Shown: one piece after another, positions 16,973 to 35,518 of the stretch
How positions within the stretch are numbered: the first letter of the stretch is position 1
How the letters are laid out: each line of letters opens with the position of its first letter
DNA from: Glycera tridactyla
Taxonomy: Eukaryota
Direction of reading: 5' to 3'
NCBI GenBank assembly: GCA_965644265.1
Contig: OZ286469.1
Coordinates: 64,666,001-64,730,000, forward strand
DNA: 64,000 bases
The notes under the pieces: model-generated
What the model was told of the DNA's origin: nothing
The model's input: only the letters and a program-made list of their open reading frames with translations
The model's database searches: none
Position numbers and translations under genes: made by a program

Positions 16973-17320
16973 CTGACTGACTGAATAGCTNNNNNNNNNN
17001 NNNNNNNNNNNNNNNNNNNNNNNNNNNNNNNNNNNNNNNNNNNNNNNNNNNNNNNNNNNNNNNNNNNNNNNNNNNNNNNNNNNNNNNNNNNNNNNNNNNN
17101 NNNNNNNNNNNNNNNNNNNNNNNNNNNNNNNNGTGAATGGAATGACTGACTTGAGTAACTGACTGACTGAGTAACTGACTGACTGAGTAACTGACTGAGT
17201 GACTGAGTGACTAACTAACTGACTGACTGACTGACTGACTGACTGACTGACTGACTGACTGACTGAGTAACTGACTGACTGAGTAACTGACTGAGTGACT
17301 GACTAACTGACTGACTGACA
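16973..17320. repeat. (GACT)n with GAGTAACT variants, spanning an N-gap (16991-17132)
   Basis: Read directly. Confidence 0.9.
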
Positions 17321-17465
17321 GAGTGACTGCTGTCCAACAGGATGTTGACAATCTATGGGATTATATATATGCTGCACGTCCCAGATCCATTATATCACTG
17401 TATCACAATGGACTGGTGGATGGATCGATCATTCAGAGTTATCATGGGGATTGGGTGAGGGTGGG

Positions 17466-17467
<2 letters not shown>

Positions 17468-17538
<71 letters not shown>

Positions 17539-17553
17539 TGAATGTGTGTGTGT
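17468..17553. repeat. (TG)n microsatellite
   Basis: Read directly. Confidence 0.95.
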
Positions 17554-23049: not shown

Positions 23050-25099
23050 TATTTCAGCGAAATGTCAACCAATTTTCTGTGTCTAATTGATAAATACATT
23101 CTAGAGCCTCTATTCCCCAGCTCAGAATAAGCAGTGAATGGCAAGCTTGCATAGAGAAGTTTTCTCTTATTTGTCTGTGTAATATGGGGTGTGCATGGGT
23201 GATGCTGGAGTGATGGGAAGTCTTGCACCTGTTGCTACCTTCACATGCCAGCACATTATGCATTGCTGTTATCTCCCGAGCCAAACCTGCCTGACTTCCA
23301 TGACAACTTCACTCAGGATATTATGAGCCAGTGTATTTTCCCATGTGCACCCAAGACTTTTGAATGATTGCCCCTCCCCCACCCCACTCTCAAGAAAAAT
23401 ATCTGGAGATTACCGCAGCAAATTTCAGCGAATAAATGAACTAAAATTCAGAGTATTCTTGAGGTTGCACCAATGAGGGGATAGTGTAGATACAATATGG
23501 TTAAATGTACTCACAGACAACAACAAAATAGCAAATGTCATGCTCACTTAAATGGTTTGAAAGAAAGCATTTGGAAAATCCTCCTGGATCAGACATTTTC
23601 CTTCACCGAGTGAATCCAGATTTAGACCCTTATTGAGCCATACTTTCTTTCTTCTATAAATTGAAAGTGTATATCATGGTGCACAAAATACATTAGTGTC
23701 AGACTTTGGTCCCTTGTTCAATAGTCAATGACTAGAATGCACTAGAAATCACATATCTGAGGTATTCTACACCAAACTGTGGAACTGCCACTGACTCCAT
23801 CACAGCCAAGATGGGTGGGAAGGAAGATGCAGCAACGAGTCCGCTCCCAAGATCGAGCAAGTGTGGACTGGAAATGAAGCATCACTGACATGCAACAAAA
23901 TCATTCATTTTGTTACCAGCTGACAAATTTTGTTCGTATGCTGTCTCACACAATAGCAGATACACTGATAATGATTATTCCGCCTCTTCAAGGTTGTTTC
24001 AAGGTCAAAATGTAATCAGATTCAAGTCAGCCATCTGGAGAGATGTACCTAATTCAGCCCAATTTCCTTGATTTAGCCCATCTATGGCTGTGGGATCCTT
24101 AGGCATCCTATCAGCAAAAGATGAGTTCAGATGCATTCTGTAATGTATACGGAGCTTGATATTGATACTTAGTCACCAGCTAGCATATAATTCTCATATA
24201 TACCATACATTTATAAGAGTTAAATCATCCTGGCATTGTCATGCTTAGGTGTGTCTTTTCCAAGACCTAAAATGAACCCAATCAAGGGAGCCTGTGACAA
24301 CCCATCGGCAAGCGTTATATCATGAGATACATCTCTCCGCAAGTAATACCATTCTCAGGATTTATTTCCCGAGTGCCATAAAAAGTAATTTCTGATTACA
24401 TCCAGCCTGGAAACTAGTTTGGAAGATCAGCGTAACAAAAGCTTGTGACGTGATTGTCCCGTAATTTGCACGCCAAATAATGGCTTCATCATTTACGCTC
24501 CGTTCATATTTTGCGTAATTGTATGGCATGCTTCAGTGCTCCAGACATGAAAACTGATTAAATACGTGAAGATGCCTGAAGTCTCTACCAAAACCTAATT
24601 TATGTGATGACCTAATTATATGAAAAAACACAACTTTGACACCTTCAACCTTGAGCTGGATTTTTCATACGTGGCCACAGAAACATGAGTACTGTTCACT
24701 GCAATACTTCTCAAAACTGATTGGATTTTCACATTTCAAGAAGGATGCATGTTGGAACACCTAACAAGAGAGATAATATCTAGATGCATTTCTGATGTGG
24801 TTGATCGTTAAATCATACATCAAGCATATAATGATTGATGTGATGGCATAACAGGTAGCCAGACTACCCATCTAAATATGGCACATTCAATATTCTGTGC
24901 TGATTGATGAAGTTGTGTAAAAGAATGCTCAAGTGTCAGGGTGTGAGGCATATAGCAGAGATCAGAGCTGAATAATTATTAATACTATAAATGGAAACTA
25001 CTAATACAAGCTGAACATGGAGAATTCCATCCCTGGATGACTTAATTGACAGCTGAGAAATAAGAACATCCAACAATTTGATCATTCACTTACAACAAA

Positions 25100-25140
25100 A
25101 TACAGACTATAAGGCAGCATGATGGATTTCAAGATTTATT
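25100..25140 (-). terminator. Candidate polyadenylation signal of the nested GT31 gene
   Basis: AATAAA on the minus strand at 25140-25135, about 700 nt after the stop codon, followed about 25-40 nt later by a GT/T-rich element (TCTGTATTTTGTTGT). Confidence 0.45.
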
Positions 25141-25834
25141 AAATAAATTATCACCAGTTCATATCATTTCAGGCAACAACAGAATAACAACATATGTGAT
25201 ATTGTAATCAACCAGAGATTTGATTTCTGTTTCCGGTGTCCTACTTTGTGCCTCTGATAGGTACATTGGTAGACTTATCAACAGAACCTCACATTCCTGA
25301 GTACACATACAGAGAACAGTTGTATGCAATTTTCACTAAGAGAATTAGGAATTAATATCAGTAGAGTATAGAGGAATAATGAACTCGATAAGTCACTCCA
25401 TTTATTCACAATTCTCTCAAAATGATTTGTGGATGCACTGACTAGCCCCCACAGATGGAGCTTTAGTATTATGGGATAAAATTGGAAAATGGCAGTCCAT
25501 AGTGGCATCCATTGTCAAAAATAATGTAATCTCACAAGTTTCTCATCAGTAGGGTAGCACAAACCATCTATAGCGGGACATTACGACGAACCGCCAGGTC
25601 TCGTACTAAACAGGAGCCACTTCATTTAGTATAATTTTCGTGAGCTGATCTCCCATCAGTAAGCTGTATCCAGGCACCATCATATCGGCTGATCATGAAT
25701 GCTATTATCTATTCACAATCAATATCTAAAAGGATAACTCTTGAGGTGGTAATAATTTGAATTGGACCACTCTAATGATCAATATCTATTGAGGTACTTC
25801 GATGAGCATAACCCATGAGCTCATTTGCCGATTT

Positions 25835-28501
25835 TTATGCATGCACTGGAATATTTTTTCTCTTACGTGGAATTACTTTTCTTGTACGAATTCTTGTTCG
25901 TTTCACTCCATGATGATCATCCAAATCTCTCTTCCATGCAAAGTCCCATAATTTTTCTGAAACTTTCAAATTATCTTCGCGGTCAAAAAGGAATAAGTTA
26001 GGGGGTGCATCTACTGACAAAGTCTTCCATCCAACTTCTGAATGTGACACTTTTAACAATTTACCTATGATACCAGTAACATACATATCATCAATCCATA
26101 TTCTGCGAGTATGATGAGCTAGATCAAACATGCGCATTGCCAAGTCAAAGGATGTCATATAGGCTATACCTGCACAATATGTTGGGTACATATCAAACGG
26201 ATACTCTTCCCGACTCACATACCATTTACCTAACTTATTCAGATTATCTCTGATTGGCACAACGCGGGTCCACTTAGTAGAGCATAGAACAGTTTTGTCT
26301 GGTTTCTTCGATTCAATCTTTTTAACCAAAGTGTCCATTTTGAATGCATTGATGTACATGTCATCATCCATTTTCATGACATATTTTGCATTAGCACAGT
26401 ACTCTGATGCCCATTTCAAACCAAACAAAGTTTTCAGAGTCAGATTACGATAAGAATCAAGGAAATTACCCTGTACCATGTCACCATGCTTTTTGGCCTC
26501 TTTGAGCACTTTCTGCTGCAGTTCTGAATCATCACGTTGTCCCACAATGAAAACAACTTGAAATGCATCTGAATTATTTTGATTGGCTTGAGCCCATGTT
26601 TGTCGAATCAGATTTCTTCGTTCATGATGGGTTGGATCTGTGTTTATGTAGATCAACACCTGCAGGTCTTTGAATTTGTCACAGCGAGGCCCTTCATTGA
26701 TGGAGCATTCATAGTTGAAATGGTTCTCCTGGGCCCAGAATGTCTTGAATTCTTTGCCCCGGGACAGTCTGATGTAAGCATCTTTATTGAATTCTGCGAC
26801 ATGATTATCCCAAATATTCTCAAAAAACTTTTGGGTACGGCCTATATCTTCCCCATCATCATAAACAAAATAACCAGCTTTTGACCGACGTGACAGGTGT
26901 GTCAACTGTTTGGCTGGAACGGAAACATGCCTGATACGCATGAGATAAGGCAATACACCAGTTATAAAGAAATCCGCAGCTGGAAAAGTACGAGTCTTGT
27001 AAAGGCGGGCAAGTAGATTAGTTGCCACCTCTCTTGACATTACATAGGCAAACCCAGCACAATATGGTGGATGGCGATCAAATGGGTATTCAAAGCTATC
27101 AACACCCCATTCGTCAAGAACATCTTCTATACCTTGTTTTCCCTTGAAGAAATGCATGTCTGAGCAGAGCATGGACCTGGCTTCATTGTGGTTGTGAAGC
27201 ATTGACAACAGCTGTTGTAACTTCACACTGTTGAGGTAAACATTATCATCAACCTTCATCACATACTTTGTACTATTGCAGTTCTCTACTGCCCATTTCA
27301 AACCGAATATTTCATGTACTGTTGCCATATCAGGATTGTCCGGAAATGACCCCTGAACGATATCATCATAAACATCCCGTTCTTTCATGATATAATTTTG
27401 GATCCCTGTAGATTTGGCTTTACTGATCACAAAAACAAGCTTTATTGATAATGACTCTAAATGTCTTCTGGCGATACTACCCCAAGTATTTCGGATGATA
27501 TTACGCCGTTTATAGCTGGATGGCTTGGAATTAACATAGATAACACAGTCAATACTACCTGTACATTTTTGATTGGTTTTTACAATATAGTCATATGGGA
27601 ACTTGAAGGAACCCTCCCAGAAGTCCACCATGTTTGAGTATTTGTATGTGATTACGCGTGATTTTTTCAATGCAGAATGATCAAATTTGAGATTGCGATC
27701 ATTATAGGCTGCAGATGTTCGAAGTGCTGGTGGCAGCTCATTATGTGATGTGTTTTGCTCTGCATTCAAAGCATCCCCAACATCATCTACATCTAGTCTC
27801 ACATGGTCCGCATCTTCCTCCTCGCCATCCTCTGCTTCATCCTCATTCCCTTCTTCGGCTCTGTTATCAGGTGCATCCCAACGACTCATGTGAACTTCCT
27901 CATCATCCTCATCATCATTCCCTTGATCTGGCTCCAGCACATCACGTTTTTGTAAATTCAAAACTCGAGACACCACCTCATCTTTGTTTTCCTGAGGAGT
28001 TTGGCTCTCAGTGGTTGTTGTGGTTGTTGTGGTCGTTGTGGTTGTCGTGGTTGTTGTGGTGTCATCATTTGGCAAGATTTTGTTTGCTCCATTTTGTGAT
28101 CCATCATCATCTGAGATGGCTGCTGCAACATCTCTCACTTCGACTGGATGCACCAACTCCATATCCTCCAATATCTCCTCAATCTCACACTTTGTAGAAT
28201 TATCACAATCCACTTTATCACTTTCAAATTTTGTCACCACTAACGATCTATTTCTCTGATTGAATACATTGACTATCACATCATATTTGCGTTCATATCT
28301 GACCAGGCAGTTGTTTCCAAGCTGGCAGGTACCAACAAGAACACCGGTTATTATCACACATGTAGTTATTGCTAACGTGAAGAAGTAACAACGTAAACGT
28401 GACATATGCACCATACTTCCACAGCAGCTAACGCACATCACCTTCATTGTGTTTTCAGGATTAGTAAATGTCATGATGTCATCTTGATTTTGCGCCCCCA
28501 T
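25835..28501 (-). CDS. Tandem two-domain GT31 beta-1,3-galactosyltransferase/GlcNAc-transferase-like type II membrane glycosyltransferase (888 aa from the first ATG)
   Basis: Uninterrupted ORF. The track start at 28540 is TTG with an in-frame TAA three codons upstream; the first ATG is at 28501. It has an N-terminal TM (YFFTLAITTCVIITGVLVG), a Thr17 and acidic stem, then two Galactosyl_T-type domains, each with RRxxIRxTW, VF, D(I/M)VQGxF, FGLKWA, KYVMKxDDx, EYPFD-x2-PxYCAG and D-x2-(I/V)TG motifs. Confidence 0.93.
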   Translation of the reverse strand: MGAQNQDDIMTFTNPENTMKVMCVSCCGSMVHMSRLRCYFFTLAITTCVIITGVLVGTCQLGNNCLVRYERKYDVIVNVFNQRNRSLVVTKFESDKVDCDNSTKCEIEEILEDMELVHPVEVRDVAAAISDDDGSQNGANKILPNDDTTTTTTTTTTTTTTTTTESQTPQENKDEVVSRVLNLQKRDVLEPDQGNDDEDDEEVHMSRWDAPDNRAEEGNEDEAEDGEEEDADHVRLDVDDVGDALNAEQNTSHNELPPALRTSAAYNDRNLKFDHSALKKSRVITYKYSNMVDFWEGSFKFPYDYIVKTNQKCTGSIDCVIYVNSKPSSYKRRNIIRNTWGSIARRHLESLSIKLVFVISKAKSTGIQNYIMKERDVYDDIVQGSFPDNPDMATVHEIFGLKWAVENCNSTKYVMKVDDNVYLNSVKLQQLLSMLHNHNEARSMLCSDMHFFKGKQGIEDVLDEWGVDSFEYPFDRHPPYCAGFAYVMSREVATNLLARLYKTRTFPAADFFITGVLPYLMRIRHVSVPAKQLTHLSRRSKAGYFVYDDGEDIGRTQKFFENIWDNHVAEFNKDAYIRLSRGKEFKTFWAQENHFNYECSINEGPRCDKFKDLQVLIYINTDPTHHERRNLIRQTWAQANQNNSDAFQVVFIVGQRDDSELQQKVLKEAKKHGDMVQGNFLDSYRNLTLKTLFGLKWASEYCANAKYVMKMDDDMYINAFKMDTLVKKIESKKPDKTVLCSTKWTRVVPIRDNLNKLGKWYVSREEYPFDMYPTYCAGIAYMTSFDLAMRMFDLAHHTRRIWIDDMYVTGIIGKLLKVSHSEVGWKTLSVDAPPNLFLFDREDNLKVSEKLWDFAWKRDLDDHHGVKRTRIRTRKVIPRKRKNIPVHA

Positions 28502-28700
28502 TGATGTACTGTCTGTCGGACCACTTGATGTCTCATCCAATTTCGTTTAATCCGGCCTCTTTTGTTATCCTCCGATGAAACCTAATTGGCTCACCTCGAC
28601 TCTCTCTCCACCAGTCAATATGTATCTCACTTCAAAAAACCCTGCTTCTTGAGATGCACAATCGGTAAATTTGACAATCGGCAGAATTTCTTGATGCAAT

Positions 28701-28732
28701 CTGGAATCAGAACAATAACATCTTCTTAGTCG
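28701..28732 (-). promoter_or_regulatory. Candidate 3' splice site of the GT31 terminal exon
   Basis: Minus strand GACTAAG (branch-like) ... GATGTTATTGTTCTGATTCCAG|ATTG, about 200 nt upstream of the ATG. Alternative acceptors exist near 28790 and 28812. Confidence 0.35.
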
Positions 28733-29845
28733 AGAGTGCCCACTGGAGAGGGCAGGTGACCTTCATTCATATAATCAATTCTACATCCTTCTGGTAACAA
28801 TTTTTATGATGCTAAGAATAAAATTTTGTCACTGATGCAATCTTTAATGAATACTACATGGGGCCCAGAAAACACTACCAACAAACTCTTGAAATCCTTC
28901 ACTTCAGATTTCAACAAAAATGGGTGACTGAAGAACCTCGAGGATGTATGAGCAGGAATACATGTGCATATATCTGGAAGGTCCCCATGCTCCACTATCA
29001 ATGTTCACTATTAAAGCGATGAAACAAATGTCGGACACATTGGCACAAATCTCAATACGAAACCAAAATTCAGCACAAGCACTTCAATTGTTTACCCGAT
29101 AAAGACATGACTATAGAAGCAAAGCTAGATGAGTTTCTGTCTGACAGACATCAGGTGCTGGAGCACCTCAACCACCCAGGCATATTCAATATTTACTGCA
29201 ATCAAACTTGCAATAATCAATAGGATCAATTCAAAATATTACTGCTACTTATTGATCAAAGGTTACATTCACTAACATATAAGTGAACAACAGATTATAT
29301 CGGCACTCTCATCAACTTTGACTTTCTGAGAAGCAACTGCTTACATTCATTTCAAACTTGTATGCCACCACACTCTGATGAACAAGGACCTGGATATGCC
29401 AGTAAAATGAATAGGGACAATTCTATGAAGACACATTCCAATGCCCGGGAATCAATTTCTAATCCCAAAATGTAGTGTATCTAAATATTAAACTCATCTC
29501 TGATATCCTCATCTCAATAATTATTTCATGGAAAACTTCACCCTATTTTTGAGATATCCAGACAAAAAATGGTGCCCAATCCAAACAGGATTGATCAGGA
29601 ATCAGTGAGGTATCAACAGATCAAGGATCTTTCAAAAATCCAAATTCAGTGAAAGAAATATAGAGGAGATTGACATTTCATGACCAGTGAGCTCATTCAA
29701 TGAGATTCTAGCATATATCATCATAATTCTTCTAGAAAACTGTGGCAGCAAGGAATGTCCACCAATCTTCAAAAATGGCAGGACATCAGCCATGAAATTT
29801 ACATATCAAATATTATTGAACTAAAAATAGAAATCATTCACTCAC

Positions 29846-30317
29846 CTTCAAAGAAATATCCATTGTCCAAATGTTGTTGACAAATCCCAGGGTAGATCAT
29901 GCCACATCGAAGCTCCCGAAGTTGATATAACCTCCATATTGCTTCAACTGCTTTTTTCTTTGGTTGCTGTTGTGAGTGGTTTCAATTCTCGGTCAAGGAC
30001 AAGGAGTGATAGTTGGTGGTTTTTCTTGTGAGCCCAACTTGGGCTATACTGAGATGCCCATCCAATAATTCAAGGTGGTAGTCCCAGGAGGGAGGTAGGA
30101 GCAGGGATGAGCTGTGTGTTCAAATGACCACACCTCAACAGCTGAAGGTTGTTTTAATGAGGCAACCCACCCACTGGCCTAAACATCAGCACAGCTGTAG
30201 CAGGCCAGCAACAAAGCCAACAACTGCAAGCTGTGCACCATACTTGCACAAATGGTGCAAGAATTATCAATTTTATATCGAATAACTAATTAAAATCCTA
30301 TTTGGGGACCACAAACT
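29846..30317 (-). other. Candidate non-coding exon (GT31 5' UTR exon or TIA-1 poison cassette)
   Basis: Consensus donor AAG|GTGAGT at 29845. Acceptor GTGTTTCCCCTTCAG at 30319-30318 (alternative TATTCTATTCTAG at 30348-30347). No long ORF. Confidence 0.25.
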
Positions 30318-32629
30318 CTGAAGGGGAAACACGTAGTTTGTGAGATCTAGAATAGAATATGCGCATCAATTAATGGTTAACTGATGGGTTCACTGTTGCT
30401 CCTCCCACACCCAAGTGAAGTTCAAATTCGTGTGCTTGCACTGGAAAAGGCATGAACTCTGCCTCAAATGACCACCTGCCTAAAATGACAACCCAATTTG
30501 ACCCCAAAAGCCATGACTATGCAGATAAATTGAATGATGAATATGACATTCATAAAATACTAACGAGGAGAGATTCTTATAAATAAGAAATTATCAAATA
30601 AAACCAAAGTGGAATGATTCCCACAATTCTGTGTGAAATTGTAGCAGTGATGACAAAAACCTCTCAGGAATATGGTTAACCTCTCTAAGAGTATCCGAAA
30701 GCTTGATTTTAGCACCTTCTGAATTTCAAATGTTTATGCAAATTTCGAATTTCAGAAGATTTTCCAGAAATATGCCTCTCTAAATATTAATGAGGGATGG
30801 AAGAGGGTAAAATGGGAATGGGGTGAAGAATGTCAGTATCAGCATCATTACCTGTGCTCTGCCCGCATCCTTAACATATATCAAGAGATGCGAAATGGCA
30901 TGCTACCATTATCCTACACCCACTACACCCCATCTCCCAAAATCAGTTTTATGTTGACATCAATCAAAATCAAGGTGCACGGGTGAGCTTTCATCTTAGT
31001 TGGTGTATTCCAGTCATGAAAGTTAAAAACGTAGCATTAGCTTTGACCCGTTCCTAATCAGCAGTCGGCGAAACGTTGTTCATTTCAGTCACGACCACGT
31101 GGCCTCCTCGGGGCCAGGCAATCACCACGCTCAACTGATTCTAGTGCTAGCCAAGCCTCAAATCCATACACACTAATCTCATCCATGGCAACATGAGACA
31201 CCATCTTCCAACTTCTGACATGCTCATAACTACTGTAACCTGCCACGCCCGCGTCTCAACTAATCCAAACTCGCACAAATTGTCGCAAAATACCGCATTC
31301 AATCTTGCCATTCGAGTTACATTCCCTCACCACAACGAGAACAAATGCATTTCATATGATGCATTGAGCAGAATGATATAAATTAAAACAATGAAAGTAT
31401 ATTATCCCTGCTTAAAATCAGATTATCAATACCAAAAGTGGTTGAATGGAATGGATTTCAATACAAATAGACAATATCATCCCTACAACAAGGATCACCC
31501 AGAGTAATCATGACTATCATAATTAATAATCTGCATGTACAACGCTGTATCTCCACAAATAATAGTCCAATTTTCTCAATCTAAATAAAAACTGAAATTC
31601 CAGCATGAAATGATCCTCTCTGGTATTCTATGGTTACCTTTGCCCTAAAAAAAAACCCACAGGGAAACCTGCTTATTCTGGGAATCATCACACCCTGCAT
31701 GATGAAGTTGAAATAAATATGAAATCCTGGAGGAGAGGTGGTGAGTAAGGATGATCTGATGTGGAGGGAACCTACGTTTGTTGCCATTCGTTCATTGAAG
31801 GCAGGATATCAGTGTTGTTGGCATTATCGTGATTGGGTGAGAACCGAGGACGGCTTACTGATCGGCAACTTAAATCACCTCTTCACCAGCCTCAAGCATG
31901 TTTCCTCCATTAGCCGTTCAGGGGCTTGAGCCGCTGGCCTGCAAACTTCACATGGAGATACCCCATACATGGGTCAATCAAACCCCCAAATCCCCATTGT
32001 CAACCCCCTCCCCCGTCACTCACTACACCAACTACACCAGACCAGTCTATTCCAAACAGATGTAAATAAATTGCCATAGTTTTCTGCTGGAGGCAATATG
32101 GTGATTGACCCTCTTGAGTCTCTTGATACTAAAGTCTAACCTGTGCTGAACATGCTCTGATATAAGGGAGAACCTTTTTCAAGAAATGATGCTGTTTTTC
32201 CACATTTAGTTCATATATGGGACACCCAAAATGGATCAAACACAGGAAATACACAGGAAAACTCCAGCGACTGATGACCAGTGATCATGCCTTGCCGAAT
32301 CAGCAACCTTGGCAACATGTATCTACGTACATTATCGTACATTATCGGGCACAGGTGGTACATACATTACCAGGCGTAGGTGGCAAAAGCTTCTGACCTC
32401 ACAGCTACTGGATTTCAAACACAGCAGGTTCAATAACTAACTATCCTCTGATGAAATATCCATCTGCCTATGTGGAAAAAAATTGTATTCATCATCATCA
32501 TATACTAGAGTGGGTCTGACTGACCTCCTGAAGAAAGACTAAATATGTTTAGAAAGAGTATATTCATGGAGCCTCAGTATCTGAACTAGTGAAATATACA
32601 ACCACCTGTTGTGTAAGACCACCTTCTAT

Positions 32630-34712: not shown

Positions 34713-34800
34713 GAGATTTGTCCAAAAGGTGCAAATGCATCTCTAAGTTGATGAGTTTCAATGTCTGGACTCAAATCTCCTACAAATATGTGAAAGTGTT
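34713..34800 (-). CDS. TIA1: TIA-1/TIAR RNA-binding protein, internal coding exon, RRM2 RNP2 half
   Basis: Translation [29 protein letters not shown](S), containing RNP2 IFVGDL. Acceptor TTCTTTCTTTTCTGTTGCAG (AG at 34802-34801), donor TC|GTGAGT (34712-34707). 88 nt; the terminal TC plus the first A of the 718 exon gives Ser in frame. Confidence 0.95.
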
Positions 34801-35368: not shown

Positions 35369-35518
35369 NNNNNNNNNNNNNNNNNNNNNNNNNNNNNNNN
35401 NNNNNNNNNNNNNNNNNNNNNNNNNNNNNNNNNNNNNNNNNNNNNNNNNNNNNNNNNNNNNNNNNNNNNNNNNNNNNNNNNNNNNNNNNNNNNNNNNNNN
35501 NNNNNNNNNNNNNNNNNN
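35369..35518. other. Assembly gap (150 N)
   Basis: N run. Other gaps: 16991-17132, 45760-45891, 50876-51018, 53517-53721, 61444-61699. Confidence 1.

Follow-up and report, generated by a model that had tools for sequence, protein, structure and literature searches.

A tandem-domain GT31 glycosyltransferase gene nested in the same orientation within a TIA-1/TIAR intron of an annelid

In the window, that is, the whole stretch of 64,000 nucleotides of Glycera tridactyla DNA analysed here, a complete glycosyltransferase gene lies between two exons of a TIA-1/TIAR gene and is read in the same direction. This layout raises the question of whether the two genes only share a place on the chromosome, or whether the inner gene competes for the splicing and polyadenylation of the outer one, so that their expression is coupled or mutually exclusive, as the initial annotation had suggested. 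The host gene is represented in the window by the following features:

34713-34800, minus strand: host exon A, 88 nt, first half of TIA-1/TIAR RRM2 (RNP2 side), ending in phase 2
643-718, minus strand: host exon B, 76 nt, RNP1 part of TIA-1/TIAR RRM2, starting in phase 2
719-34712, minus strand: host intron, 33,994 nt, GT..AG, enclosing the nested GT31 gene

Exon A is preceded by ttgcag and followed by gtgagt; the corresponding borders of exon B are ttgcag and gtaaga. The exons were compared with the databases singly, one by one. Exon A corresponds to residues 6-34 of human TIA-1 (chain 2mjn_A, E 3e-12) and exon B to residues 35-58 (E 2.9e-5), so that the two matches abut exactly. Both exon A and the exon following B had TIA-1 and TIAR as their top matches; the top match overall of exon B itself was the generic RNP1 of hnRNP A2/B1. 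Joining A to B is compatible in phase, with the split codon TC+A giving Ser and the frame being kept. The claim of two in-frame, same-strand RRM2 exons is thus borne out by splice signals, phase and abutting matches together. A third RRM2 exon (exon C, L017:7524-7628) is located about 12.4 kb before the window and matches residues 60-92 of 2mjn_A; exons A, B and C cover residues 6-34, 35-58 and 60-92 in order. RRM3-like exons, found by motif, lie further downstream on the same strand and in the correct order. Exons A and B each occur once in the 2.04-Gb assembly. No other ORF of at least 120 aa in the window carried a Pfam domain above threshold, and scans of the intron (719-34712) for Rfam families and tRNAs were blank. 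The host, as judged from its sequence, is the only TIA-1/TIAR gene of this annelid, a very large one in which RRM2 is split by an intron of 33,994 nt.

The nested gene and its predicted protein are laid out as follows:

25835-28501, minus strand: coding sequence of the nested GT31 gene, 888 codons plus stop, single exon
28322-28390, minus strand: signal anchor (type II membrane), residues 38-60
28010-28060, minus strand: mucin-like tract of 17 Thr in the stem, with an acidic stretch after it
26921-27511, minus strand: GT31 domain 1, residues ~331-527
26039-26623, minus strand: GT31 domain 2, residues 627-821

The 888 codons are counted from the first ATG; from an upstream TTG, which is directly preceded by an in-frame TAA, the count is 901. 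An intact glycosyltransferase frame on the host strand had been noted before, and the open frame and two Pfam Galactosyl_T domains confirm it. The whole protein matched PF01762 in two stretches with 284.2 bits (E 6.7e-85; gathering cut-off 23 bits). Scanned alone, domain 1 scored 120.7 bits and domain 2 scored 171.9 bits; their mutual identity is 30%. Motif II of the GT31 family is the DxD motif for the metal and the nucleotide sugar (PMC8022947). At this position domain 2 has MDDD (residues 710-713), which retains the motif and is aligned with the DSD of B3GALT5, whereas domain 1 has VDDN (motif at residue 413), which departs from it. At motif V, (E/D)DVxxGx(W/C), domain 2 reads DDMYVTGI, compared with EDVFVGLC in B3GALT5, with the acidic pair retained and the glycine off by one. 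In domain 1 the sequence is ADFFITGV, with Ala replacing the first acidic residue. The sole hydropathy peak above 1.6 in the protein starts at residues 36-44, as in a type II topology. From the N-terminus onwards the protein would consist of a short tail and the signal anchor, then a stem that is rich in Thr and acidic, and finally the two GT31 domains in tandem, with a basic tail at the C-terminus. The gene is best classed as an old single-coding-exon member of the B3GALT/B3GNT-like branch of GT31, and we predict a Golgi location and β-1,3 transferase activity for its product.

The reading frame is intact and under purifying selection. Contigs differed from the coding sequence by 14 synonymous changes at 551 sites and 7 non-synonymous changes at 2,113 sites (pN/pS ~0.13). 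The two domains together with the tail account for 11 synonymous and 3 non-synonymous differences, and domain 1 alone for 6 and 1, respectively. The genome contains at least 58 GT31 loci; the closest paralogue among them shares 39-40% identity and likewise has an uninterrupted frame. A recent processed retrogene was considered and rejected: no A-tract follows 25372, no poly(A) remnant, flanking repeats or target-site duplications were found around the gene, and there is no similar intron-bearing parent (best 40%). The only similarity found in the repeat search was an internal one of 77 nt between the two GT31 domains.

The borders of the transcribed unit were derived from Logan contigs of four public runs; their RNA label is the tool's guess, and contigs do not show strand, true ends or levels. 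The features obtained in this way are:

28502-28639, minus strand: minimal 5′ UTR (X1 contig 28417-28639)
25372-25834, minus strand: 3′ UTR, ~460 nt (contigs X1 25372-25835, X3 25386-25977 and X2 25400-25566)
25401-25406, minus strand: AATAAA poly(A) signal, probably used, with contig ends 1-29 nt downstream in three runs

Contigs of three runs (RNA by guess) span 25372-28639, with almost nothing beside the unit, and pass the start and stop codons without joints. Across the four runs 20 of the 22 listed contig pieces (four short low-complexity matches being set aside) fall inside the unit, which makes up 54% of the 6-kb stretch considered (binomial estimate, P ~3e-4). The 1,071 nt downstream of the unit (24301-25371) were not covered in any run. 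The presence of a poly(A) signal, as claimed in the initial annotation, was thus confirmed, but the contigs favour the AATAAA at 25406-25401 over the distal one at 25140-25135, and they shift the end of the unit from near 25100 to near 25372-25400. The 5′ UTR carries an out-of-frame uORF of 21 codons (ATG 28536-28534), whose TGA overlaps the in-frame Met10. The contigs reach no further than 28639, which leaves 61 nt to a candidate acceptor and room for a spliced 5′ leader. Neither a CpG island nor a clear core promoter was found upstream of the unit (CpG o/e 0.23 in 28701-30700); the CpG profile is uniformly depleted (~0.46), with no promoter-marking island. If the runs are RNA, as guessed, the nested gene is apparently expressed, and it may have a promoter of its own.

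Based on these observations we consider it highly probable that the locus is an ordinary same-orientation host/nested pair, in which a GT31 gene with its own transcription sits inside a TIA-1/TIAR intron. The intron (719-34712) encloses the entire unit (25372-28639), and host and guest alike are read from the minus strand. Transcription of the nested gene would start within the intron, at or above 28639, and its message would end probably about 15-30 nt past the AATAAA at 25406-25401. The host polymerase would read through the nested unit, and the whole unit would leave with the intron. The intron contains 17 AATAAA and 13 ATTAAA hexamers, which the host polymerase already passes.

An unlikely arrangement is one in which the GT31 unit additionally serves TIA-1 as an alternative terminal exon or as an intronic polyadenylation site. 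Splicing from exon A to 28700, or cleavage at the 25401-25406 signal, would then give a product truncated inside RRM2, and the two outputs would be coupled or mutually exclusive. The site in question is:

28702-28701, minus strand: AG of the candidate acceptor, whose exon would begin at 28700, pyrimidine fraction 0.71

Such competition is made conceivable by the common strand of the two genes, by an AG at 28700 with a moderate pyrimidine tract, by an apparently working poly(A) signal in the GT31 unit and by a frame that, continued from exon A, stays open for 36 codons up to a strong donor-like site, GAG/GTGAGC at 28595/28594. However, the pyrimidine fractions of the host acceptors are 0.88 and 0.82, and the intron contains 112 YAG sites that equal the candidate acceptor or are richer in pyrimidines, so that this acceptor, listed as a candidate in the initial annotation, is no better than chance. 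The contigs show neither a joint nor a loose end at 28700, none covers 28640-28900, and the X1 contig passes the donor-like site unspliced. Among the contigs that cover the unit none joins it to a TIA-1 exon. In a chimeric message, moreover, the GT31 frame would stand behind the TIA-1 frame and remain untranslated; since it is nevertheless under purifying selection, transcripts of its own must exist regardless. Still less probable is that the nested unit acts as a regulated trap for TIA-1, ending transcripts in the middle of RRM2 via the 28700 acceptor or the 25401-25406 site. If it did, TIA-1 and a lineage-restricted two-domain Golgi enzyme would be set reciprocally, possibly under the control of TIA-1 itself.

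A scaffolding misjoin could have placed the GT31 gene or exon B, in which case the true intron would be without the gene. Two N runs flank the relevant parts:

16991-17132: N run within a (TGAC)n array, placed between exon B and the nested gene
35369-35518: N run just above exon A

We regard this explanation as very improbable. The sequence from exon A (34713) to the GT31 unit (28639) is free of N, so that the gene follows 6 kb downstream of the 5′ splice site, with the partner exon further on. The run at 16991 lies within an array, with the TGAC unit occurring on either side of the run, and exons A, B, C and RRM3 are ordered correctly on one strand. The two findings that had been named as able to overturn the nesting, a misjoin and exons from different TIA paralogues, are largely set aside, as the window exons are unique and the sole intervening N run falls inside the (TGAC)n array.

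Introns are a frequent landing place of retrocopies. That the ORF, intronless and located in an intron, is a retrocopy or decaying duplicate devoid of function and transcribed only with the host intron is the least probable explanation and is largely refuted by the length of the open frame (888 codons in DNA of 40% G+C), the low pN/pS, the halt of contig coverage at the unit borders instead of its continuation through the intron, the lack of a parent gene above 40% identity and of retrocopy marks, and the fact that a single coding exon is normal for this GT31 branch (PMC8022947).

For the ordinary host/nested pair, correct gene models would comprise two separate genes, with the GT31 gene drawn as a single exon that has a 3′ end of its own near 25372-25400 and is overlapped by a uORF. 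Annotators should take care not to fuse it with TIA-1. The nesting itself would gain interest only if RNA showed TIA-1 transcripts ending in the guest or reciprocal expression of the two genes. The two-domain GT31 protein, for which no orthologue exceeds 43% identity, may prove more interesting than the nesting.

In an exhaustive search of 1.84 billion protein representatives the nested protein gave 10,367 matches, with identities of at most 43% and without a match to residues 1-290, and no orthologue was found among these representatives. A word-index search yielded no matches for the whole protein or for residues 290-888; with domain 2 alone it returned only relatives of at most 38% identity (molluscs, a fish, Capitella). 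An exact look-up found the protein not to be on record, and a metagenome scan was blank. The nearest solved relative of domain 2 is human B3GALT5 (8zwp, E 2.4e-34). With the vertebrate B3GALT/B3GNT genes, whose coding sequence is contained in a single exon (PMC8022947), the nested gene shares the Galactosyl_T domain, the type II layout, the one coding exon and the DDD at the DxD position of domain 2. Unlike them, it encodes two catalytic-type domains, a stem with 17 Thr and an acidic stretch and a basic tail, and in its domain 1 the DxD position is occupied by DDN and motif V contains Ala. Multi-domain GT31 proteins from public genomes (e.g. P0012, P0013 and P0031) likewise contain several Galactosyl_T stretches, 2-7 per protein, but are only 27-36% identical to the nested protein and no closer to it than single-domain relatives. 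No TIA-like exon was found within 10 kb of three multi-domain loci (L013-L015); as these are not orthologues, this is uninformative.

The same-strand nested layout is real but common. In mouse and human, host/nested pairs involve more than one tenth of genes, and the frequencies of same-strand and antisense nesting are "broadly similar" (PMC11694760), which weakens the premise of the initial annotation that most nested genes are antisense to their hosts. A nested pair of TIA-1/TIAR and a GT31 gene was not described in the literature searched. The present locus differs from the catalogued mouse and human pairs (PMC11694760) in that it belongs to an annelid and combines a TIA-1/TIAR host with a GT31 guest. 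It resembles the same-orientation pairs among them in having a complete gene in one long intron on the same strand, and in a host that must read through the guest's own poly(A) signal.

The initial annotation placed a GT31 glycosyltransferase gene on the same strand within an intron of a TIA-1 gene, and this structural reading is right. The host exons are as follows.

34713–34800, minus strand: exon A, bounded by ttgcag and gtgagt
643–718, minus strand: exon B, bounded by ttgcag and gtaaga
L017:7524–7628 (assembly DNA on the low-coordinate side), about 12.4 kb before the window, minus strand: next host exon after exon B, matching 2mjn_A residues 60–92 (E = 2.8e-13)
about 15.5 and 27.3 kb before the window, host-downstream of the preceding exon: two RRM3-like exons

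Exons A and B enclose a GT..AG intron of 33,994 nt. The last two bases of exon A and the first base of exon B form a serine codon, so the reading frame is kept. The host exons were compared with solved structures singly. Human TIA-1 was the best match of exon A (2mjn_A residues 6–34, E = 3e-12); TIAR and further TIA-1 entries came next. The top matches of exon B were generic RNP1 structures (hnRNP A2/B1); it matches residues 35–58 of 2mjn_A, which directly abut the stretch of exon A. Splice signals, shared codon and abutting matches bear out two phase-compatible RRM2 exons flanking the guest on the minus strand. The further exons came from 40 kb inspected host-downstream of the window, and the one at L017:7524–7628 matches only TIA-1, TIAR and PUB1 among solved structures. 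An origin of exons A and B from different TIA paralogues is rejected, since each of them occurs once when the complete 2.04-Gb assembly is searched in six frames; the runner-up matches (E > 0.1) lie on other chromosomes.

The GT31 gene sits 6 kb downstream of the 5' splice site of exon A with no N run in between; the exon that pairs with this splice site must be further on. A single N run (16991–17132) lies on the way from the gene to exon B; it had been named as a possible break in contiguity. The TGAC unit borders this run directly on both sides, and to its right lie about 46 copies of the unit as a (TGAC)n array, then a (GT)43 array (stretch 16991–17553). Such flanks are more readily explained by a simple repeat that is masked or unresolved than by the joining of unrelated contigs. 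N runs in the window vary in length (132–256) and are thus not fixed-size scaffold gaps.

The open frame of the guest (25835–28540, minus strand) comprises 901 codons from a TTG just downstream of an in-frame TAA; its first ATG at 28501 yields 888 codons. Pfam identifies this intact frame as Galactosyl_T (PF01762, GT31) with E = 6.7e-85 in two matched stretches. Searched separately, residues 291–590 and 591–888 scored 120.7 and 171.9 bits (cut-off 23). The protein has a single hydrophobic segment near residues 38–60 and a stem with 17 consecutive threonines and an acidic stretch, followed by two GT31 domains and a basic tail. Domain 2 (26039–26623) carries DDD at the DxD position; its nearest solved relative is human B3GALT5 (8zwp, E = 2.4e-34), then B3GNT2. 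Domain 1 (26921–27511) has DDN at this position, and in its motif V the first acidic residue is replaced by alanine (motif definitions from PMC8022947). The domains share 30% protein identity, and over 77 nt their DNA is 75% identical, with a spacing of 882 nt. To judge from these similarities, the two-domain layout arose by internal duplication long ago.

Four runs of one study, labelled RNA by guess and stored as contigs, were compared with positions 24301–30300. Leaving out four short low-complexity matches, 22 contig pieces remained, 20 of them inside 25372–28639. As this span makes up 54% of the region, even coverage would give such a count with P ~3e-4 (our binomial estimate). None of the runs covers the 1,071 nt downstream, and the only pieces upstream are two short ones from run X1 (29003–29190 and 29928–30079). 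Both align colinearly with the genome; they may derive from host pre-mRNA, from upstream transcription of the GT31 gene or from a repeat that is expressed elsewhere. No joints were found in the contigs over 24301–30300, and both start and stop codon are spanned without a break. The low contig ends in three runs (25372, 25386 and 25400) lie just past the AATAAA at 25406–25401, which appears to be functional in the guest. The distal AATAAA (25140–25135), from which a 3' end near 25100 had been proposed, has no contig cover, and the 3' end is accordingly moved to about 25372–25400. The resulting 5' and 3' UTRs measure at least 138 nt and about 460 nt. As evidence for a processed message with a single exon this is good, though indirect, and it comes from contigs that are silent on strand, true ends and levels.

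The 5' UTR covered by an RNA-like contig contains an out-of-frame ATG (28536–28534) opening a 21-codon uORF (28536–28472, minus strand). It overruns the main ATG and stops at a TGA that shares bases with the in-frame Met10 codon (ATGA). The overlap suggests leaky scanning or termination-reinitiation, and Met10 is possibly the real start. CpG observed/expected is about 0.46 across the whole window (range 0.30–0.66) with no island, which fits germline methylation over a giant host gene body including the guest.

Contigs and window disagree at 27 positions, 21 of them in the guest CDS: 14 synonymous per 551 sites and 7 non-synonymous per 2,113 sites (pN/pS ~0.13). Residues 300–888 account for 11 synonymous and 3 non-synonymous differences. 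The frame is kept by selection, domain 1 included: with 6 synonymous versus 1 non-synonymous differences it is constrained despite its DDN and alanine substitutions, even if non-catalytic.

Coupled or mutually exclusive expression of host and guest, as initially proposed, is possible, without support here. The AG of the candidate acceptor upstream of the guest (first exon base 28700) exists but is unremarkable: its pyrimidine fraction is 0.71 versus 0.88 and 0.82 at the two host acceptors, 112 YAG sites within the intron are equal or better, and no contig of the four runs reaches it. The intron holds 17 AATAAA and 13 ATTAAA in host sense, so host polymerase routinely passes poly(A) hexamers. 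In a chimeric message the GT31 frame would trail the TIA-1 frame, untranslated; the constraint on this frame thus points to messages made by the guest itself. A would-be exon of 106 nt (28595–28700, minus strand) extends from the acceptor-like AG to a strong donor-like GAG/GTGAGC at 28595/28594. With exon A spliced to 28700, the TIA-1 frame would stay open up to this donor, and the 106 nt would shift the frame ahead of exon B, in principle a candidate poison exon. The sole contig there, from X1, runs through the donor unspliced. Among the papers searched, an RBFOX2 splicing study is the only one with both "TIA1" and "nested gene".

The absence of introns does not mark the guest as a retrocopy. 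At least 58 GT31 loci are present in the assembly, almost all of them uninterrupted frames, and vertebrate B3GALT/B3GNT genes, like the guest, have their coding sequence in one exon (PMC8022947); intron absence is thus a family trait. Around the guest there is neither an A-tract past the 3' end nor flanking repeats. The best paralogue shows 39–40% identity to domain 2. Word-index protein searches found no relative above 38% identity, an exhaustive representative-protein search gave 10,367 matches with none above 43% and none to residues 1–290, and a metagenome scan gave no match. Domain by domain, the top matches were single-domain proteins (34–40% identity); multi-domain GT31 proteins with up to seven stretches do occur among the representative matches. 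No TIA-like exon lies within 10 kb of three such relatives (non-orthologues). Another GT31 match in the assembly (G000:C7:36623154–36623741) lies inside a 1,396-codon open frame, so this annelid may have more multi-domain or fused GT31 genes.

The guest, apparently expressed in runs that are RNA by guess, is a real gene under constraint, and its arrangement is of an ordinary kind. More than one tenth of mouse and human genes belong to host/nested pairs, nested genes favour long introns in both species, and premature host polyadenylation is associated with nested-gene expression at some loci (PMC11694760). The premise that most nested genes are antisense is weak: in mouse and human the two orientations occur in "broadly similar" numbers (PMC11694760).
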